Counted from the stretch's first letter, positions 2,571 through 48,500 are shown. The stretch is DNA of 64,000 bases from Cyanophora paradoxa CCMP329 (GCA_004431415.1 QPMI01000083.1:1-64000), one strand, 5' to 3'. Notes: generated from the sequence alone by a model not told the origin. Numbers and translations: made by a program.

Positions 2571-4891
2571 ATGCCGGACGAGATAATTGCGCGCGTCATG
2601 TCTTTCGTCGGTCTAGATTCGGCCGTGGATCTTAGGACCGTCTGCCGGCAGTGGCGCCGCGCGTTCAAAACTGTCCTCTGGGAGCGGCTCGAAACCGACG
2701 TCAAGGACCCGAAGCAGTTGCAAGTGCTGACGAGGCTTCTACAGTCCGGGCAGCTGCGGCTGGACCCCGGAATCAACCCATGGCCATCCGTCAAGCTCCA
2801 GCTCAAAGTTCCTGTTCCGGAAGACGTGGAAGATATCTGTGAGGAAAGTGCACATGTGCGTCAGAAGCTGCGGCGGCAAACAATGAACCAGCTTGCGGCG
2901 TCCGTCGCGTTTCTCGCCAAGTGCACGAAAACGGCCGCAGTGAGTGCCCGGCAGCGAATGCAGCAGAGCTCGAGCTCTTCCTCCCCGATCGCTGGCATCC
3001 GCAGCCTACATGTACACCTGCACCTCAAGAGCAATGAGCCTTTTCTCTCCCGCACCATCACATCTGATCTTCTCTTGGGAGCGCTGCAAGCTGCGGACCA
3101 GCCACTAGCAGAGCTCGATCTCGACATTGATGATACAAATAACGGAGAATACGACCTCTGGTGTCCATCCCCTGAGGAGCTGCAGCCGGCGCTACTGCCG
3201 TTCCAGAATTTGCACACTTTCTCACTTTTTACGTCTTCATGCTTGGCTCCGTGCATTTTGACTCGTCCCGCGGCTGCAGCCATTGTGCAATGCTGTCCAC
3301 TCCTTCGATCTGTTAGTTTCCATCCGGAGGATGGCGCATCTGTCGCAGCCCTGGCGCCCCTTGCTTCTCTTGAGAAGGTAACTCTGACAGCGTATGTGTC
3401 GGAACTCCTTGAGGGAGGTGAGCCGTGCAACATTTCCGGTCATCGCCCATGTCCAGTCGCGAGCGATGATATCGATATCGATGCTTCGCGATCGAATCAT
3501 GATTCGTGTTGAATCTGCAGATTACGTTCTGAATCGTGTTGAATCTGCAGATTACGATCAAGAACACGACCTGGATATCCGCGGGGGCCCTGAAGCACTC
3601 GGAGCTGGCCTCGCCGGCCGGTCTATTCGAATCGTCCGGTTGCAGCGGTGCGAGCCTGCCCCTTTCATAATCTTGCTTCCGGTCATGATCAATTACGATA
3701 TATGGTTTTCAGTAAATCGCTTATTTTGGGTGCGGACGTCCGAGGATTCGGCTCCATGTCAGAAATTGTCGAACTTCAGAATCTGAAGGTGCTTTGATTT
3801 CTAATATATACTAAGAAATTTAATTCACCGTCGATCGATCCCAATCGCAATCGATATGTGCTGGTGTCTAGAGACTGGCCGGTAATTCACCAAAAACAAA
3901 AATATTAATCGATATTGATTGCTCAGTTCAGATTGATGAAAACCAGTCCCCGATCGCGCGAGCGGACGCTGCAGCGCTGAGCGGCGCGAGGAGCTTGCGA
4001 AGACTCGAGGCCGAAGTCTATTCTGCCGCGGGCGCGGGCGCTGCTGCCGGAGACTTCCTGCTCGGTATTGCTGACGCTGTGCGTGAATTCTCGGATTCAG
4101 GCTGGAACCCGCCAACGCTAGAAATTGAAGTTCACGGTGCGTTACTAAGTTACACTAAGCTTAAGTTACGCGGTGCATGACTCGACGTGACGTGCATTGT
4201 ATCGCAAATTGTGCAGGCAAGTCTCCCAACCCCAGTGAGGATACGATCAAGCACTTCATTTCTCGGACCTGGCGAGTGCTCCACTCGTGAAATAGTAACA
4301 TATTGCAGCAGTGATATACTGTCCAATTCCTTGTAGTCCTGTACCCCTGTACCTCAGTCCACCTGTACCCCTAATACACCATCTTGCCAGCTATCTAGCC
4401 TGGCAATACCTGGCGAGTACTAGTGCTCCACAAATTCGACCTTCAGCTTGAACGGCCTTTCACGTGAGTCACTGAGTGCATCACCCACTTAATCGTGACG
4501 TGATATCTCGCGTTTAACGCAACAGCTGAATATTAATATCGATGTGGATCAGGAAAGGCGAGGTCGACGAGCTGCTTCAATGCGGCAAGATGCTGCAGCT
4601 GCAAAGCCTACGAATCAGCATGCCGATCGAGAAGTTTTCGGACATCTACCCTCTCCAGGTCTCTCTCACGTTTAGTCCAGTCTCCAATTATAATTTATAA
4701 TTATATGTAAATTTCCCGCAAAGCGCAATTTCTCAATTCTCAATGCGCAGGGGTTGGAAAAATTCGAAAAGAAGAAGGGACGTCGATTTCCCTAGCTAGC
4801 GCTCACTGTCGGGGTGCCCCAAGCGCAGGAGGACTGGAAAGCCGAAATTGAGGCCCTACTGAAGATCTGGCTGCCTTTGTGGGATGTCTAA
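2571..4891 (+). pseudogene. F-box protein with RNI/LRR-like C-terminus, multi-exon, probably disrupted
   Basis: F-box motif MPDEIIARVMSFVGLDSAVDLRTVCRQWR and LRR-like segments (FQNLHTFSL, CPLLRSVSF, LASLEKVTL). Downstream exons run to ...LKIWLPLWDV* at 4889-4891. There is an in-frame TAG at 4793-4795 and a solo-LTR-like insert at 4301-4408. Confidence 0.6.
4301..4408. mobile_element. Solo-LTR-like relative of the LTRs at 50042/54659, opposite orientation
   Basis: 108 bp, TATTGCAG...CTGGCAATA. It aligns by eye with the reverse complement of the 110-bp LTR (shared tattgcag, atatactg, cctgtacccc, acctgtacccc, ccagcta, ctggcaa). Confidence 0.7.
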
Positions 4892-5246
4892 AGAGATCTG
4901 CAGCTGAGCATTATTGACCCTCGATCGTCTACGTATGATCATATGAACTTGGAGCAGAAGACGTCGACGTATACTCGGGCTCCGTATTTCTCTTTGCCTT
5001 CTAACGCTGTGAGTGTACATGTACGTATACAGCCATGCATACATATAAATATACTGGCAGTGTTCCTGATAATATATATACGGACTGATTACATTATATA
5101 ATGTTGTCTTTTAAATTTTATGCTGTGATGCACACAGCCATGCAATATATTATGAGGACTAAGGATGCACCTCGTGTAACCTTTTTGTGTGTGCACCTCG
5201 ATCATACATGGCATGACCCGGTACCCTGATCACAAGTTCGTAATCC

Positions 5247-8200
5247 CTACCCCCCGCCCGGCCCCGCCCCGCCCCGCCCCTGCGGGCTGGGCCCCCTCGC
5301 CTCGCGCTCCGCCGCCCTCAGCGCCAGCCGCTCCGCCAGGATCCGGTTCTGCGGCGGCTGAATTCAGATCCGCTCCGGTCCGAGTCAACTCAGATCAGAT
5401 CTGATCTGATGTGAGTCACCTGACGCTCGCGCTCGGCGTCCACAGTCGCACGGAGCGCCGCCACCTGACGGGCGCCGCGAGTCAGATCTAGAGGTGGTGA
5501 GCCCGGGTCGGTGGGCAGCGTGAGCCCGACGGCCTAGGGCGCGGACCGGGGACCCCTCCGTTCCTTCCCTCCCCTCCCCGACCCACCCAACCCCCGCGCC
5601 CCCCCCCCCCCCGCGCGCACCCCTCTCCTCCCCCCCCTCTCCTCCCCCCCCTCCTCCTCCACCCCCCCCGCGCACCTCAGCTGAGAAAGCGTCGAGTATG
5701 GCACGCCGCTGGGCCCCCTCCTGCCGCGCCTGCGGAGGGTACGTGAGGAATTGGTTCGGCTTCGTGGACGGGGGCGGGCAAGGGAGGGAGGGAGGGGGGC
5801 GGGGAGGGAAGGAGAGGGAGGGGTACCTTGACGTACTGGGCGCGCCAGCCGCCGGCCTCGGGCCCGCCCCTGCGCCGCGCGTGCGGCGGATCAGCCTTCT
5901 GTATCGTTCTGTCTTTATTTATATCTAGCCTCCTTGTGCTTCAAACAGTAGCATCACATTTCTGGAGCTGGTACTTAAAAGAAGCAAGCACACGGTGGAG
6001 ACCTATCTATCTATCTTGCGCCGTCGCGATAAAATCCACAACCTAGCCTGGCTTTAAGCTTCTAGTCCGGCCTCGATTGCATTTAGATTCGGTCTTCATC
6101 TGGGCGGGCGCACGCGGGGGACCGGAAGCCATCGCGGGCGTAGACGGCCTCCCACAGGGCGTCCAGCCTATGTCTTTATTTAGATATAGCCTCCTTCTAT
6201 ATCGCTCTGTCTTTATTTGTATCTAGCCTCCTATTATATGTCTAGCCTCCTTGTGCCTGGGCGCACGCGGGGGGCCGGAAGCCGTCGCGGGTGTAGAGGG
6301 CCTCCCAAAGGGCGTCCGACTCCGCCAGCTCCCGCCACCGCCTGCTCCGCCCGCGGGGCGTTCGGAGGTCAGAAGGCGGCGCGTCAGCGCTAGCGTTCGA
6401 GCTTCGCAATCTTTAGAATCTTCTTAAGATCGCCTTTAGTTTTTATAGATCTTCGCGATCTTTATAGATCTTTTATAGATCTTCTTAAGATCGCCTTTAA
6501 TTTTTAATAGATCTTTTATAGAGGTTAAATAAGCTGGAGTCTTTGGATTCTTGCCTGGAGACGGCGGAGGCGGCGGCGAGGTCCTCGGCGGAGAGGCGCG
6601 CCAGGACCGCCGCGACGAGCTCGTCCGGCAGCGCATCGAAGCCGGCACCGGCGGCGGGGGCGCCGGCGCCCTGCGTCGAGATGGGTTAGAAACGGGGGAT
6701 CCGGGACAGGCGCCGGACAGGGAGCCGGCGCCACCACCGGGGCTAGAGCGGAGCGGGAGGAAGGAATTCGAAGGCGTAGAAAAGCGTAAAGAAAGCGGAC
6801 CTCCCTCGAGCCGAGGCGGCGGAGGTCGTCGGCGAGGGCGGCGAGGGGCGCGTCGAAGCCGGCCAGGCCGTGCCGCCGGCACACCTTCGAGAAAAGAAGC
6901 GAGCCGCGTCGCGTGAGCGGGGCGGTCCTCCGACATATGCAGCTAGATAGAATCTATGTAAACGTATTCAGAAGATAAAAGGCGGCGGAGAAGCGAGCCG
7001 CAAGTGAGCTGCATGAGCGGGGCGGACAACCGACACAGCTAGATAGAATTTAAATGACTCCCGCTGGAGAATCGAGGACGAGTCGGCGCCGGCGCTCGTA
7101 CCTCGAGGGCCCAGCGGTACTCGGCGGCGGCGCGGCGGAGGGCGGGGTACACGGCGCGCGGCTCCCCCTCGGGGGCCAGCTGCGGGGCGGGGCGGGGCGG
7201 TCAGGGCGGCGGGAAGGGCTTAGAAAGGATGCTGGCGCTGAGGCTTAAGCCTGAGCTCAGCCCTAAGAAGAAGCGGGGGGAGGGAGGGGAAGGGCGGGCC
7301 TGGAGGTAGAAGCGGACCAGGAGGGAGAGATAGCCGAAGGAGGCTCAGGAGCTAAAAAGCTAGGAAGGTTAGAGACGGGATATTCTATACAGATATTCTA
7401 TTCTATTCTATTCTATTCTATTACAGATAGGACTTGGGGGGGGGGGGGGGGGGAAGGTCCAGGGCAGGAGGGCGGGCCTGGAGGTAGTGGCGGGAAGCGA
7501 CAAGGGGCGGAGAAGTGGGGGGGAAGGGCGGGCCTGAAGGGCCGGAGGTAGATATTCTATTCTTAGCTAAGAAGAGGGGTGGGAGGGAGGGCGGGCCTGC
7601 AGGTAGAGGCGGGCCAGGGCGACCTCTGAGCTTGGAAGCTTCTGCTTCTAGATCTTCTGCTCCGCGAAGAACAGAAGAATCTATATAGACCCCTAAGCTA
7701 AGCTTCTTTTACGGCTTCTAAGGTTCGTTCCAACTTCTTCTAACAGGGCGGAGGGGAAGGGCTGGCCTGGAGGTAGAGGCGGGCCAGGGCGACCCGCGCA
7801 GCCACCGCCCCCTCGTCCACCTGCGGGGAAGGGCGCGTTAGGGCCTGGGAAGAAGCCAAGAAGCTTAGAGCACGTTTAGGCAGAATCGACAAATGAAACG
7901 GCAGAGGGCGGGCCTCGGGGGGCCGCTCGGGGGCCTGCTCCGCCTCCAGCATCTCCCCGCTCCGCACGTAGATCTGGTACTGCGCGGGCGGCGGGTGCAT
8001 CCGTGAGCGAGAGGGGCCGAGGGGCCGAGGGGGCAATTAACCAATATCGGTCTGATTGGATGTAGGACCGATGTGGGGTATGCTATAAGGTGATGTGATA
8101 TTGGAAGGCACCGAACGAGAGCTGGAACCTAATGATCTAGAGCATTCCAGAAATAACTGAAGACTAATGATCTGGAGCATTCTAGAACGGAGAAGGCGGG

Positions 8201-34900: not shown

Positions 34901-35831
34901 GGTTTCTGAGGGCGGGGAGGGTACCGCCGCCAAGCGACGCAAGTCCAAAGCCCTTCGCGAGGAGACGACACCCCCCTCCACGGTGCAAAATCGTACCCGT
35001 GATTGCTCCTAGGAGCCGCTGACGACTCTGTACGCGCAGGCCAGGGGTAAGGGAGATTCGGAGGGGGAGATCTCCGAGGCGGGGGACGATTCCGAGCCCG
35101 AAGTCATACCCCAGCCCTCCAAGCGGCGGGCCGCCCCTGCCCCGGCCCGGCCCCGGCCCCGGCCCCGCCCCGGCCCCGTCCCGCCGCCGCCCGCCGCCCC
35201 GGCCCCGGCCCCGCCCGCCAAGGCCGCGCCGCCCCGCCGCCCCCGCCGCAACCGGCTCGTGCCGCCCCGCGCCGGCCCCCGCCCCGCCCGCCCCTCGGCC
35301 GGCGCCGGGGCCCTCGCAGGCGCCTGCCGCGTCTCAGGCAGCGGGCGCGGCGGCGGCCGAGACCGCTTCTCGCTGGCTCAACATCAAGTGCATCCTACCC
35401 CAGGCGAGCTGCACGTACCCCTGCCCCACCACTTCGGCACCCGTAACCCTGGGCCGGGCGCAGGAGTCGGGTATCTCGACTCTGCGGCTTGGAGCCCTCG
35501 GGGCCGCCCCCAAAATATCGGATTTCCGCCGCATCCTTCAGACCAAGATCCAGATAAAGTACCCCACTCTGGAGTGCGTCCCTCCCATTCCTGCCAGACA
35601 TCGCGTACCCCCGCCCGTCTCAAGCCAGCCGCAGGATTGAGCGCCTCTCGACGCCGGACGGAGACGAGCTCGAGGACGACGTACCCCTCTGGGACGCGGT
35701 CGAGCCCCGGAGCGAGGCAAGCGGCCGTACCCCCCCTGACCCCCTCCTCGCGCCTGAACCTGTACCCGCGCGCGCCCCCGCAGGTCCGGGCCCACCTCGC
35801 CATGATCCAGAGCGTCGGGGACTACGAGTGA
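31983..35831 (+). CDS. Helical-repeat (TPR-like) protein with long acidic/basic disordered linker and C-terminal ubiquitin-like segment
   Basis: ERAEALLGLGEAELH and RAWLGAARARAYLRNYSDALEALE; NLS-like RKRK; terminal IERLSTPDGDELEDDVPLWDAVEPRSE-VRAHL. Start codon uncertain. Confidence 0.55.
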
Positions 35832-36161
35832 GCGGATGGGGGCCGCTCTCATGATCACGAGCTTTGCTGCCTGCTGTCCTTGACCTGTACTCAAAGGGCT
35901 CTCTGCCTTGTCTAGATCTTTCAAGTCGTTTTGTGTGCCGTGCTCTCTGGATTGGAGCGACGCGGGAAGCAGCTGCAGGGCTCCCGCAGTGAGCCGGCGG
36001 GCTTGACATCCGGCCGCTGGAGCTTCGAATTCATATCTAGATCTAGAGCTGTACGTTCCGAAGTTTCGCGTTCATCCGGGGGAACGGTCGCAGAGAAAAG
36101 CTGTACGCCCCTGACGCGCAACCCGGCGGCAACCGAGTCGCGCAGCGGCGGTTAGGTTAGG

Positions 36162-39100
36162 ATGGTAGCGAGCGCGTTCAGCTGCGCACCGGCGCTTCCC
36201 GGGCGGCGATCGGCGTCCTGGCGCGGCGCGGCGCCCCTGGCGTCATCTAGCTCGCGCGCGCCGGTACCGGTCCGAGTCGCGGGTGAGCCCCCGCCGCAGC
36301 GACACGCGCCCGCACGAGAGCGCGATCTACCTACGATCCTGCGCGAGGGACGGCGTTCCGACGCAAGACCCGCCCGCGCAGGCCCCGCCTCCCGTCAGAA
36401 GGAGCTCGCCCATGCACATGAGCGCCACGGCCACGGCCACGCCGTCTTCGAGTGCAAGCAGAAGCTTAAGGCGCCCGGCGACGAGAAGAACAAGAAGAAG
36501 GCGCTCCTTCTCGACTGCGGCCCCGCCTCCCGTCAGAAGGAGCTCGCCCATGCACATGAGCGCCACGGCCATGGCCACGCCGTCTTCGAGTGCAAGCAGA
36601 AGCTTAAGGCGCCCGGCGACGAGAAGAACAAGAAGAAGGCGCTCCTTCTCGACTGCGGCCCCGCCTCCCGTCAGAAGGAGCTCGCCCATGCACATGAGCG
36701 CCACGGCCATGGCCACGCCGTCTTCGAGTGCAAGCAGAAGCTTAAGGCGCCCGGCGACGAGAAGAACAAGAAGAAGGCGCTCCTTCTCGACTGCGGCCCC
36801 GCCTCCCGTCAGAAGGAGCTCGCCCATGCACATGAGCGCCACGGCCATGGCCACGCCGTCTTCGAGTGCAAGCAGAAGCTTAAGGCGCCCGGCGACGAGA
36901 AGAACAAGAAGAAGGCGCTCCTTCTCGACTGCGGCCCCGCCTCCCGTCAGAAGGAGCTCGCCCATGCACATGAGCGCCACGGCCATGGCCACGCCGTCTT
37001 CGAGTGCAAGCAGAAGCTTAAGGCGCCCGGCGACGAGAAGAACAAGAAGAAGGCGCTCCTTCTCGACTGCGGCGCGCGCCGTTCTCTCTCTCTCTCTCTC
37101 TCTTCGCTCTCTCTTCCTAAAGCTGCTGCTCTCTCTTCTCTCTTCGAAGTAGCCTAAGGTGGCTTAGGTGTGGCGGTAGAGTTAAGACTCTGCCCTGTCG
37201 GGCAAGACTTGCTTGCACTGGGTGTCCTCTATCAACTCTAACCGTCCCGGGCGCTCCGACCACTCCTGCGCCTAAAGCCTCCTCCTTTCTCAGACGGGGT
37301 CATCGCGGACACGGAGCCGGACGGGCACCGCGTCTCCTTCAACCGCGCCTTCAAGGCCTTCGGCATCGACACGGAGTTCGACAGGGCGCTCCACGACCGC
37401 CTCGTGCGTCTGTGATGCCGAAGCGAAGCTCGCGCATCTGAGCTGGAGCCGCGCGCCCGCGGCCCGGCCGCCTCGTCACTCTAGCTTAAACTTCGATTTC
37501 GGACCGGGCCGCGAAGTCTTTGAAGCTTAAGTGAAACCAAGCGCGCGCCCGCGGCCCCGGGCCCGGCCTTCAGCTTCAAATCTTAGCCCTGGATAGCCGC
37601 GCGCCGGCGCGCGCGCCGTGACCGCTGAGAATGGGCGCCGCGGCCGCTCCGTGGCGCAGGTCAAGGTCGGCGGCGGGAAGGAGCTCATGAGCAAACACTT
37701 TGACGAGGTAAAGGCAGCCGCCGCCAAAGCCGCAAACGTCTAAGTTTAAACCCGTCTATAATAATAGCCTTACAGTAAACGGCAGCCGCCGCCGACGCCG
37801 CCCCGCGATCTCAGACCGCGCGCGCGCCTCGGCGGCGCCCTCATTCCTGACCGTCGAGTCAGATCGGCTGGCCCAAGGAGCAGCTGAAGGAGCAGTGCGA
37901 TACCGATACCCCGGCCGCGCTCCCGTTCTCCGCCCGCGCTGAATCTATCACTCATTGCGAACCTCAGCGGCGGCGACAAGAAGAAGCTCATCGCCGAGCT
38001 CCACAAGGCCCGTACCCCCTGAGAAGTCCCGTACCCCTCCCTGAGATTGCGTACCCCGCCGCAGGTCAAGACGGAGTTCTTCATGGACCTGGTGAACAAG
38101 GGGGAGATCCCCGGCCGGGAGGGGTACGTCGAATCTTTCCTAGGAGAGGGGGTACTGCCCTATCTTGAAGTATCTCACCCCCGGCTGCGCAGCATCACGC
38201 GGATCGTGGACGAGGCGATCGCGGCGGGGTACAGGATCGCGGTCTGCTCCACGGGCCACGTGGAGGCGGTATCCGGGATCATGAAGCACGTGAGCGCGTG
38301 CCCAGGGGGGGTACCGCGCGCTCGAGCCACAGACCCCTTCTGATTCGGAGCGCGAAAAACAAGGTCTTCGGCGAGAAGCGGCTCGAGAGCTTCGACGGCC
38401 TCTTCGCGGGTGCGGTACCCCCCTTCTCCCGACCCGGACCCCTCGAGCTCACCCTACTGTACCCCCATCCCCACTCCCCCCTCCCTCGCAGGCGATATGG
38501 TCCCGAAGAAGAAGGTGCACCCCTTACCCCCTGCCCGAGCGACGCGTACCCCTGCCGCATTTTGCACTAACGCGTACCCCCATCGCAGCCGGACCCGGCC
38601 ATCTACACGCTGGCCTCCAAGCGCCTCGACGTACCCCCCGAGAGGTGCGTCGTCCCCCCCCCCCCCCCCCCCCGGCCTGGCCAGCCCCGCCCCCCCGCCC
38701 CGCCCCGCCGCCCGCCTGCCACTCATGAGGCCTTTCTACCGAAGCTGCAGCTGCGCCAAACGCATCAAGCTTAAGAAACCGAGTCCAAAGTTTTATAGCG
38801 CTGTAAATATTTAAAGCTGAACCGAGAGCTAGCTCTCTGAGAGCTAGTGTGCTTCAAGCTTCTGAACTTGTTCACTTCGAATCTGACTCAGTGAGTTCGC
38901 ATCCACAGGTGCGTGGTGATCGAGGACAGCCGCATTGGCCTCCTGGCGGCCAAGGCCGCCGGCATGCCCTGTCTCATCACGGTCCGGCCCGACCCCGACC
39001 CTGCCCCACCCCACCCGAGCCCGTTCGATCGGGCCGCCGAGTCGCCGAGTCGGGCCGGCGATGCTGAAATGCCGGTACCCCTTCCCCCGCAGCGGTCGGG

Positions 39101-39303
39101 GTACACGCAGGAGGAGGACTTCCACGAGGCCGACCTCGTCGTCTTCAACCTCGACGTACCCCCCCAACTCTCCCCCCCCCCCCCCCCCCCCCCCCTCCTC
39201 CTCGAAACCGATGCCCCGGCATGCGCAGGACGGGAACGTGGGCCTGGATACGCTGGAGAGGCTTATCAAGCGGGCTGTCCACGGGCGGGGCGCGCAGGCG
39301 TAG
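36162..39303 (+). CDS. cbbY: CbbY-like HAD-superfamily phosphatase with plastid transit peptide
   Basis: MVASAF... Ser/Ala/Arg-rich presequence; motif I ALLLDC|DGVIADTEPDGHRVSFNRAF; VGGGKE; IAVCSTG; GDMVPKKK-PDPAIY; CVVIEDSRIGLLAAKAAGMPCLIT; YTQEEDF. Confidence 0.9.
36382..37071 (+). repeat. 5 x 138-bp tandem repeat corresponding exactly to cbbY exon 2
   Basis: Units start at 36382, 36520, 36658, 36796 and 36934. Units 2-5 are identical; unit 1 differs by one synonymous base (cac vs cat). Confidence 0.95.
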
Positions 39304-40183
39304 AATTATTATAGCGGCTGCAGGCCAAGGCCTCGCGATCGTGCTATCAAATCAGATCAAAATCTTGTTGCTCGCGCCCAAGAGGCACTTCGGAAACTGC
39401 AGTGCAGAGGGGGCGGCCGCGGGGCCGCCGCCGGCCCGCCGGGCGTGCACGTGCACGTGCCACGGTGGGCCGGGTCCGGTCGCGATTGCCATCAGTGGCG
39501 CCGCCTGCAGCTGCCGCCTGCGGCGCCGGCCGTTCGCGACCCGGGCCACGTGCACAGTGACCATACGGCGGGCGTCGGCGGCGTCCGAGGGTCCACAGTG
39601 AGGGGCCACGTGCACTGATCATCATGGCATGATCATGAGGACACAGCGCTAGCGCTAGCCCACCCCCCACCCCCGACTAGGCCGCATATGCATGCGCGAT
39701 ATGCGCAGGCTGGCGCCGCCCGGCGGCGCGGCGGCGCCGGCAGGCCCGGGCCGCGGCCGCGACGGCGGCGCGACGCTCAGCGGCTAGGCACGCCGGGCCG
39801 TCGCCGGCGTGACGTCGCTACCGGTAAGCCTCGGTAGGCGGTAGCCCTGGAGGGCCAGTACTAGTGCCGGCCCAGTGGAGGCTGGCGCTGCGCTAGCCTG
39901 CATGCGGTGCCATCATGGCATGCGCAGCCTGCGCGCGAATGCGCATGCAATTTCCCATTCACATGAGATCTTTCCCGTACCCGTCCAGAGTAGTTGGCGA
40001 TTCGGTGTCCGGCTCAGGTGCCGGCCTGGCCAGGCTAGCCTTCCTACAGGGCCTAGAGAAGCGAGAGTGCAGGTGGTGCAGCTGCCATCGAGCTCTTCTA
40101 GCCTGGGATACTCGTGCGAGAAGCAGTCGACTCGGGTCGAGTACTAGTCGGAGTAGGTCCAGCCGGCGCCCGCGGCGTGCGCA

Positions 40184-45500: not shown

Positions 45501-48500
45501 TAGATTCTAGCTTCTAACCAAGCTCCCACCTCCCTTACTTCTCCGGGTGCTTGTCTCGAAGTTGGCGGCCGCCGGGCCGGCCTTAGCCTTAAGCTTTTGA
45601 ACCTTTAGATTGTAGCTGGGTTTTCGCTTCGAAATAAGCTCCCGGCTCCTAACTTGTAAGCTTCAGACGGTGGCGGCGCGGCCGGGCGGCCCCGTCTCGA
45701 AGCTCGCGGCGCGGGCGGCGATCCGCGACGCGGGGCACACGACGGCCCAGGTCCGTGCGCGCTTAGAAGCAAGCCTACTAGGCTAAGAAGCCGAAACCAA
45801 GATCAAAAGAGAAAGCCTAGGAGCCATGAGCTTTCTCGCCCGCCTAGTGCTCTCTCTACCCTTTCTCGCCCGCCTAGTGCGCGCGCCTAGTGCGCGCGCA
45901 CTTAGAAAGCAAGCCTAAGAAGCCAAAGCCAAAGCCTAGGAGCCATGAGCCTTCTCGCCCGCCTAGTGCTCTCTCTACCCTTTCTCGCCCGCCTAGTGCG
46001 CGCGCCTAGTGCGCGCGCACTTAGAAAGCAAGCCTAAGAAGCCAAAGCCAAAGCCTGGGCGCCATGATCCTTCTCGCCCGCCTAGTGCTCTCTCTCTCTC
46101 TCTACCCTGCCCTGCCGCTCTCGCCTTGACCTAAGAAGCCAAAGCCAAAGCCTGGGCGCCAGTGCTCTCTCTCTCTCTACCCTGCCGCTCTCGCCTTGAC
46201 CTAAGAAGCCAAAGCCAAAGCCTGGGCGCCAGTGCTCTCTCTCTTCTGCCCTGCCGCTCTCGCTCTCTCTCGCCTTGACCTGCGCACGGACCACGGCACA
46301 GACCGCCGCACGCCTCTCCGGCCTCTCCTGCCGGTGCGCGCCGTACCCCGCCCCGCCCCGCCCCGCCCCGCCCGCTCCCCGTACCCCTGCGATTCCTGCC
46401 GCCCCGCCCCGCCCCGCCCCGACAGGCCCCGACAGGCCCCGACAGGCCCCGCCCCGCCCCGCCCCGCCCCGCCCCGCCTCCTGACCCTGTATCCCCACCT
46501 TCGGACCAGGCACGGGATCGCGTCGCGGGGCACGCCGTACGCGGCGGCGGCGGCCGGCGAGGCGGCGGCGGCGGGGGTGGCGCTCCACGTCCCCTCCGCG
46601 TGCTGGGTGCGCGAGGGGCGGGGGGCGGGAGGAGGGCAGGACGGGAGGGCAGAATTTCGGAAAAGCTGGCCTTTCTACATACACACTAGAGCCTCACACT
46701 AAATGGCTTGCGGAAATTTACACTCTAGAGCCTCGCCTTTCTCCGCCGTCTTGGCGTCTCCGCCGCCTCAAGAGCCTCGACTAGGCTCTCTTTTGAGCCC
46801 CCGCGAAGAAAGCTTATGGCTCCTTAGCTTTCTTTTGAGCCCCCGCGCCCCCTAAAGCGACGTGGAGCTGAAGGGGAGGATCCCGCAGGTGCCGTCGCGC
46901 CCCAACCTGCGCCGCGGTTCCATCTTCCGCACGAGGTGCGCCCGCGTCACGCCACCCGGCGCCGCCCCCAGGGAGAGGAGGGATGGGGTTCTAGTCGGCG
47001 ATCGCCGGGCTTCCCCCCCCCCCCCCCCGGATCCCCCCCCTCCCCTCCGGGCTCTCTGACTAGCTAGCTAGCGAGCTTGCGCTGAGCTTCTGTCTCCTTC
47101 TCCCTCTTCGAGGGGCCCAAGCCCAGGGCCGCCCTAGTTCTAGTCCAGGCCGATGAGGGGCCAGCTAGCGTGCACTTAGAATTAGCTTCTGTCTCCTCCT
47201 CCGTCTCCTGGAGTCGCCTTTCTTAGAAAGCTGTAGGGAGCACTCTCCTCAAGTCGCCTTCTTAGTCCATCTCTTTATTAGTCCCGGGGCTCCTCCGAGG
47301 AGCTTTCTGACGGGCCTACCCCCCCTCCCTCTCCCCCCCCCTTCAGCCTGGACGCGGTCCGCACGAGCCTCGACGGCCTCCGCGGCGGCTTCGTTAACAT
47401 CGCGCGTACCCCCCTCGCTCTATTATTTTTAGATCGCGCCTCATCCATCCACTCTTGCGCAGTCCCTGGGCCCGCCGGGAGGCCGCGGCGGCCGCCGGAT
47501 GACGCTGCCGGGGCCGGGCGAGTCCGGCCCGGGGGAGCGGGGCGCCGGCGTGATGCCGATTCCGGAGGCGCCGACGGCGGAGCAGCAGTCGGCGCTGTGG
47601 CGCTGCCTCTGCTGCAGCGGCCTCGGCGGGCTCATGGCGGTGCGCGTACCCCCCCCCCCGCTTCCCCCGCCCCCCTCTCTGGAGCCTTCAAATACTTCTA
47701 GAAACCAAACGAAGTCTAAAAAAGAAATAGCCTCTCTTTTCGTCGCTTTGGTTGTCTGCGACTCCTAACAAGCCGCCCGGGGCGGGGCGGGGCGCAGAAC
47801 CCGGTGCGGCCGCACCGCCTGAGCGAGTCGGAGCAGCAGCACCACCACCAGGCCGCCGAGTTCCATGACGTCCACCTCGCGGTGCGAGCGCCAAATTTTG
47901 AGTAGCTTGGATAGCTACAATTGCAAGCTTAATGGGTTGAATAAAGAACATAGGCGTCTTAGATTGGCTTATAATTAGGCGTCTTAGCCTAAGGCCGCCG
48001 AATTCCACGACGTCCGAGGCTAGGCCTGCCAAATGGGTTGATGGCATAGGCATCTCAGAAACGCTCATAATTAAGCTTATATAAGCTGTTCTACGCTAAG
48101 CTTAAGGCACCTCGCGGGCGCGCACCACGTCTTAGTCAATTAGAGCCGGGGCTTGAGCTCAAGCCAAGCTCAAGGCCTAACCTGCCTGCTGAAGCTTGAG
48201 CTCAAGCCCCGGCTCTAATTTACTAAGACGGCCACGGGGAGCCAAGGGAGCCAAGCTGAAGAAGCGATTAGCTCCCACCACTCCCCCACCCCTCCCACCC
48301 CCCTCCCACGCCCCTCCCCCTCCCCGCGCCCTACCCTCCACACCGCTCCCTGGTCCTCTCGCTCACACTCCCACGTTCTTGTTCTTAGGGAGCTTAAGAG
48401 CTTAAGCTTAAGATTATTATTATTGTCACTTCGGGAGCTTGAGGGGCTTAAGATTATATAATTGTTATTAGAGTTCGCGCGGCGGCCCTCTCGCTCACAC

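Follow-up and report, generated by a model that had tools for sequence, protein, structure and literature searches.

Five intron-free copies of a single exon in a predicted CbbY-like phosphatase gene of Cyanophora paradoxa, probably produced by tandem DNA duplication

The stretch of DNA analysed here (64,000 nt of Cyanophora paradoxa CCMP329, QPMI01000083.1:1-64000; hereafter the window) carries on its plus strand a gene predicted from its sequence to encode a chloroplast-type CbbY-like HAD phosphatase. One exon of this gene is present in five tandem copies with no intron between them. The features of the gene are listed below, a slash marking an exon-intron border, a unit border or a split codon here and throughout.

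36162..36282, plus strand: exon 1, with the start codon and a transit-peptide-like leader (MVASAF...VRVA and the first base of a Gly codon); from translation and the RNA contig of run X15.
36283..36381, plus strand: intron 1, GT..AG, 99 nt, phase 1; RNA joint; its last base, G, falls inside the repeat homology.
36382..36519, plus strand: unit 1 of the 138-nt exon, carrying the only variant, C at 36434.
36519..36521, plus strand: first of four internal junctions G/GC, a minimal GC-donor look-alike (G/GCCCCG); from sequence and donor comparison.
36520..37071, plus strand: units 2-5, mutually identical, with T at 36572, 36710, 36848 and 36986; each encodes (G)PASRQKELAHAHERHGHGHAVFECKQKLKAPGDEKNKKKALLLDC.
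37072..37293, plus strand: intron 2, GC..AG, 222 nt, phase 1; RNA joints from the unit end to 37293/4 in runs X15 and X17; its first bases, GC, lie inside the repeat homology.
37294..37403, plus strand: exon 3, which completes the Asp codon (g/ac) and continues GVIADTEPDGHRVSFNRAF; from translation; joined to the unit before it, it forms HAD motif I DxDG.
37660..39303, plus strand: the remaining 11 exons of the CbbY-like HAD phosphatase gene, to the stop codon; from RNA joints, the exon table, Pfam HAD and a PDB match.

Tandem Repeats Finder reports a 138-nt array at 36381-37073 (5.0 copies, 99% matches, 0% indels, score 1379), which is by far the strongest tandem array within the 64-kb window. 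Its length of 693 nt corresponds to 5 x 138 + 3, the additional 3 nt being a GGC arm. A script places the unit starts at 36382, 36520, 36658, 36796 and 36934, and the sole difference among the five units is at unit position 53, where unit 1 has C (36434) and units 2-5 have T, a synonymous change in a His codon (CAC/CAT). The four internal junctions, 138 nt apart, read ...GACTGCG/GCCCCGCC... and join exon end to exon start without intron sequence. In sequence, the array ends show neither target-site duplication nor tail nor filler, no bases are inserted at the junctions, and the 138-nt unit has no second place within the window outside the array. The initial annotation, made from the sequence alone, had drawn the same picture: the boundaries 36382 and 37071 and the number of five units are confirmed by Tandem Repeats Finder and unit comparison, the GGC microhomology at both splice sites is seen in homology that continues past the units, by 1 nt before 36382 and by 2 nt after 37071, and the intron-free character of the junctions holds for all four when sequence and RNA-verified exon ends are taken together.

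We mapped two DNA runs (X1 and X2) and two RNA runs (X15 and X17) over 35700-39400 in the form of contigs only, which give rough depths. X1 and X2 are independent, coming from different samples and studies, and the locus is present in fourteen DNA samples of Cyanophora paradoxa and in several runs of this alga that are probably RNA. X15 and X17 represent spliced RNA, as their contigs skip 13 introns and several introns are at zero depth. One RNA contig joins exon 1 (end 36281-36283) to the first 30 nt of the unit, the contig of run X15 spanning 36120-36281 before it jumps to the unit start, and the last 29 nt of the unit are joined directly to 37293/37294 in contigs of both RNA runs. With RNA joints at both unit ends, the exon therefore exactly equals the repeat unit and its donor is G/GC; the split codons g/gc (Gly) and g/ac (Asp) place both introns in phase 1. 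The repeat unit is exactly one phase 1-1 exon with a G/GC donor, so that the earlier proposals on exon identity, GC donor and phase are borne out by the spliced RNA contigs of two runs and by the split codons at the two borders.

GC donors are found in 2 of the 13 introns of the CbbY-like gene. The second such GC-AG intron lies at 38008-38064 (AAG/GCCCGTACC...CGCAG/G) with RNA joints in two runs, and thus Cyanophora paradoxa uses donors of this type. Compared with the gene's other donors, the terminal donor of the array, GCGCGC, fits well at +3 to +5 (G in 7/12, C in 9/12 and G in 9/12), and the donor at the internal junctions, GCCCCG, fits at +4 only. Two further features were observed among the introns. 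An intron in 38645-38914 begins with GTGCGT, and the next exon (38909) begins with the same GTGCGT, a 6-nt direct repeat at the intron ends such as is left when an intron is gained through duplication or repair. Long poly-C runs are present in two introns, at 38650-38675 and 39170-39195, and short-read DNA contigs break at both.

At the protein level, the leader encoded by exon 1 has 40 residues by translation, and the frame stays open across all 5 x 46 codons. The unit peptide PASRQKELAHAHERHGHGHAVFECKQKLKAPGDEKNKKKALLLDC, which is rich in His, Lys and Cys (HAHERHGHGH and Cys), occurs five times, Gly-linked. The last unit and exon 3 together give ALLLDC/DGVIADTE, which is the HAD motif I DxDG(V/T), and the junction that builds it is RNA-supported, in agreement with the initial annotation that the exon is needed to make DC/DG with the exon at 37294. 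Among 1.84 billion representative proteins, the 46-aa unit has one match, P0001 (564 aa; EukProt Cyanophora_paradoxa tig00000331_g24151.t1, from a protein cluster with one member), which is 100% identical in five stretches. Within the 126-400 aa range, a 229-aa array query returned no isoform or allele with another number of units, in a search whose scope is that of sequenced strains, and residues 1-330 of P0001 used as a protein query matched only P0001 itself. The downstream part of P0001 contains Pfam PF00702 and PF13419 (HAD) above cut-off. P0001 matches Arabidopsis At3g48420 (CbbY, PDB 4uav) with E 1.6e-57 and bacterial CbbY with about 1e-32, and DCDGVLVDTEKDGHRISFN of At3g48420 aligns with xLDGVIADTEPDGHRVSFN of P0001.

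P0001 is a gene model that overlooks the GC donor at 37071/37072 and takes up instead a mini-exon, GVAVELRLCPVGQDLLAL, from the intron repeat (37170-37225, residues about 272-289). This mini-exon separates the catalytic DC from DG, so the catalytic DxDG of the public gene model is broken because the GC donor was missed. Among the contigs of the two RNA runs, no RNA joint corresponds to the mini-exon. P0001 also carries extra residues at two later introns, which appear as gaps in the 4uav alignment.

The number of units in the genome was assessed from the independent DNA contigs. Since the reference was assembled from long reads of a genome with 67.6% GC, in which some regions are difficult according to the authors of the assembly (PMC6704402), and since the units are not directly countable from short-read contigs, we considered whether an assembly or polishing artefact had produced the array from one copy or from far fewer than five. 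However, both DNA runs contain a 168-nt contig (138 + 30 overlap) that is a closed unit-to-unit cycle. In X1, this contig reaches a depth of 346 where the flank has about 85 (4.0x), and in X2 a depth of 217 where the flank has about 46 (4.75x), both being rough values taken from contigs; the depth expected for five units with one variant unit is 4.78x. The left flank DNA contig continues from intron 1 into the unit, the locus recurs in the fourteen DNA samples, and the unit-to-unit junction is seen in the RNA runs while several introns have zero depth. The array is real in independent samples, with about 4-5 copies by depth. Genomic copy number, proposed at the outset as the check on an artefact, comes out at about 4-5 and not one; on the independent DNA and RNA contigs we reject an artefact, which is very improbable.

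The unit-to-unit junction appears in X17 as a closed cycle contig and in X15 as a unit contig that is branch-bounded at both ends. At the variant site, the RNA unit contigs carry T, the letter of units 2-5, and not the C of unit 1. Relative to other exons of the same mRNA, the RNA unit depth is about 2.9x in X17 and 1.8x in X15, again rough values from contigs; at face value, transcripts average about two to three units. The lower unit depth in RNA than in DNA could reflect either the use of internal G/GC junctions as donors or RNA (sub-)strains with fewer units, and it is compatible with the partial removal of copies from internal g/gc junctions that the initial annotation had offered as one of two outcomes.

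Within intron 2, downstream of the array, a (TC)n tract (37083-37114) precedes a dispersed repeat of roughly 100 nt (about 37150-37253). The DNA k-mer depth of this repeat is about 3,400-5,900 against about 85 in the flanks, the high depth extending over 37064-37311, and no second copy of it is found within the 64-kb window. The repeat may be a short non-autonomous mobile element, and it is also seen in RNA contigs that continue into other loci. Retroposition of (TC)n and the dispersed repeat as the cause of the array was rejected, the insertion lying downstream of the array and not within it, and no second copy being present in the window. An Rfam search over 36000-39500 gave two sub-threshold chance matches only.

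Transcripts related to parts of the gene were also observed. A 40-nt exon at 37968-38007 is common to contigs in both RNA runs that diverge on both sides, one of which continues TTGAAGACCAAGCTTTTCATGGATCTTGTC (LKTKLFMDLV). The divergence suggests a second CbbY-like transcript, from a paralogue in which this exon is almost the same. In both RNA runs, another contig matches the His-Gly codon stretch to 36442 and then reads GCACGGCCACGCGCACAAGCACGAGG, and it represents either a different transcript that has a comparable His-rich stretch or a variant form of the 138-nt exon.

How often an array would coincide with an exon by chance depends on the splice sites themselves. Exon-exact microhomology of at least 3 nt is present in 6 of the 12 internal exons of the CbbY-like gene, because acceptors end in ..AG/G and donors read G/G(T/C). 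The GGC microhomology is not special and has no power to separate a DNA from an RNA model, and, owing to the splice-site consensus, the pairs that microhomology favours include those for an exon-exact duplication. With the gene reconstructed to hold a single copy of the exon (2,590 nt), we enumerated 793,469 distinct possible tandem duplications of period 30-500, 11 of them exon-exact; with arms of at least 3 nt, there are 17,539, including 5 exon-exact ones. The exon-exact probability per duplication event is 1.4e-5 to 2.9e-4. Local duplications across exon-intron borders show no enrichment in the CbbY-like gene, where p about 0.04 was reached by 2 of the 26 probes placed on junctions.

The published PacBio genome of Cyanophora paradoxa (Price et al. 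2019, PMC6704402) comprises about 100 Mb with 67.6% GC. Genes make up 60.3% of it and contain on average 9.2 introns, whose mean length is 86 bp. Arrays with a period of at least 30 number about 9 per 64-kb window, which extrapolates to roughly 14,000 in 100 Mb and about 8,000 within genes, a crude figure from one window at a uniform rate. Roughly 0.1-2 exon-exact arrays are expected per genome without any RNA step, and thus a single exon-exact case is no excess. Elsewhere in the window, at 45812-46263, two adjoining young arrays (119 nt x 2.4 and 70 nt x 2.4) are 95-97% identical, CT-rich and apparently non-coding; they show active long-period tandem duplication in the region.

Together, these observations suggest that the array probably arose at the DNA level, through a recent microhomology-mediated tandem duplication that later expanded. 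Two GGC triplets, one at the acceptor (aG/GC) and one at the donor (cG/GC), enclose the 138-nt segment, which would have been copied twice in the course of replication or repair, and unequal sister-chromatid exchange or more slippage would then have brought the array to about 5 units. The array would be tolerated, being in frame (46 codons) and placed in the linker that separates the transit peptide from the HAD core, where only the last unit would have to pair with exon 3 for DC/DG. The internal junctions would recreate a weak G/GC donor, and some transcripts may drop the extra units. Within this DNA explanation, we infer the slippage, the stepwise expansion, the tolerance and the internal donor use.

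Several features fit a DNA-level duplication. The form of the array, n units plus a 3-nt arm (693 nt), is that expected of microhomology-mediated tandem duplication, and the array ends without target-site duplication, tail or filler. The divergent unit is the edge unit, unit 1, and in arrays homogenised by unequal exchange the edge unit is usually the divergent one. Across species, tandem duplications with arms of at least 3 bp occur above random expectation, form the dominant class and can expand to multi-copy repeats (PMC13167724), so that the published record favours a DNA mechanism by default. Exon-exact microhomology of 3 nt or more in half of the internal exons and the expected 0.1-2 arrays per genome point the same way: with a consensus motif at both ends of many exons and very many short exons, an exon-exact duplication is an expected rare outcome and does not by itself point to RNA. 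Still, that both ends should fall on RNA-verified splice junctions is improbable for any one event (1e-5 to 3e-4), the expected count is a rough one-window extrapolation, and a 3-nt arm belongs to the weakest microhomology class. No 1x, 2x or 3x alleles that would mark stepwise growth were seen, and border-crossing local duplications are at chance level in this gene.

The same array could have been reached through RNA, and the initial annotation had read it as a concatemer possibly derived from a circular RNA. The 138-nt exon would be back-spliced to a circle, or repeated by trans-splicing, and copied round by a reverse transcriptase; the multi-unit cDNA, or the RNA acting as a repair template, would then recombine in register with its own chromosomal exon. 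Exon-exactness would be automatic and not a coincidence, all internal junctions equal the back-splice junction, and units 2-5 are identical, as one-step synthesis would yield. Reverse transcriptase sources are present in the genome (LINEs 2.47%, LTR elements 1.77%; PMC6704402), copies of circular RNAs have been documented in mammalian genomes (PMC4897178), and reverse transcriptases are reported to produce concatemers on circular RNA in vitro. On the other hand, an RNA route has no distinguishing feature, its product being identical to that of DNA duplication, and a circle would give the very junction reads that linear read-through of the array gives. The introns on either side, of 99 and 222 nt, are short and offer nothing in favour of back-splicing; the complementarity between intron 1 and intron 2 (-73.7 against a shuffle mean of -72.2 ± 5.5 kcal/mol) was matched by 40% of shuffles. 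No retroposition marks are found at the array, which lies in register in the parent exon with the introns intact on both sides, and one exon-exact array per genome is within chance expectation. To our knowledge, insertion of circRNA-derived sequence into the parent locus by homologous recombination has never been shown, and the copies known to derive from circRNAs are pseudogenes at dispersed sites and do not sit in register in a parent exon (PMC4897178). The structural part of the initial reading stands, and the recombination of a rolling-circle cDNA finds no specific support. We consider an RNA route unlikely, from the back-spliced or trans-spliced template to the final in-register recombination, and the DNA slippage on GGC that had been offered as the alternative is the likelier of the two. 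It is correspondingly doubtful that the array represents the first trace of a circular or exon-repeated RNA written back into DNA at its own locus, with a CbbY-like exon circle reverse-transcribed and recombined with its own exon.

Whether the array is useful is a question separate from that of its origin, as either route could have supplied it. The His-rich 46-residue module might have been kept as a metal-binding or regulatory N-terminal tail, or the number of retained units, through alternative use of GC donors, might tune the enzyme. The reading frame is kept, the unit is rich in His, Lys and Cys, and the RNA depth of about 2-3 units on average differs between the two RNA studies (1.8x and 2.9x), although these depth figures are rough. 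However, the DNA copies are near-identical, so that selection would not yet be visible in so young an array, and outside the product of its own gene the unit has no relatives in the set of 1.84 billion representative proteins. Every extra unit also brings a spare beta-1 strand (ALLLDC) that could disturb folding. Retention for a metal-binding or regulatory tail seems improbable, and tuning by unit number equally so.

If duplication at the DNA level is the right reading, the locus offers a clean and young case with RNA-verified exon borders in which the splice-site consensus supplies the microhomology for intron-free duplication of a whole exon. Such a duplication would add protein repeats and at the same time recreate donors that may allow the copies to be spliced out, a small link between tandem-repeat birth, exon duplication and intron growth. 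If instead the RNA route were true, it would represent a new route of exon amplification and protein-repeat birth, by which circular RNAs can rewrite their own genes. The analysis also corrects the public gene model tig00000331_g24151.t1, in which use of the GC donor restores the catalytic DxDG.

Among known enzymes, the closest comparison is with CbbY and At3g48420, a xylulose-1,5-bisphosphate phosphatase (PDB 4uav, 4uar), with which the downstream exons align, including the DxDGV motif I and GGGKE. The Cyanophora gene differs from At3g48420 in an added N-terminal 46-residue His-rich linker, present five times, and its enzyme activity is a prediction only.

With regard to origin, the array resembles the products of microhomology-mediated tandem duplication (PMC8639346; PMC13167724) in its filler-free head-to-tail copies, in its integer units plus one GGC arm, in its high identity and probably in a variable copy number. 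It differs from them in that the arms lie exactly on an acceptor and a donor, so that the unit is a whole exon, that each junction recreates a minimal GC donor, and that the arm is just 3 nt. The circRNA-derived pseudogenes of mouse and human (Dong et al. 2016, PMC4897178) likewise have a genomic exon-end to exon-start junction with no intron and in back-splice order, but they are dispersed, mostly multi-exon, located at sites other than the parent gene, in many cases next to LTRs, and out of frame, whereas here five single-exon units lie in register within the parent gene and are part of its mRNA.

Two further systems bear on splicing of the copies. Intron gain or extension by tandem genomic duplication, as in the potato RdRp gene (PMC4974935), is similar in that a splice signal is re-copied, the extra copy is removable and a normal mRNA is possible. 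In the potato case, a segment of an internal exon with AGGT was duplicated to give a new intron; in Cyanophora, the entire exon was duplicated, only the donor G/GC was re-copied, and much of the RNA keeps the extra copies. Classical tandem exon duplication, which copies an exon with flanking intron, shares the whole-exon units and the frame-keeping phase 1-1 symmetry, but it retains an intron between the copies, whereas the Cyanophora array is without any.
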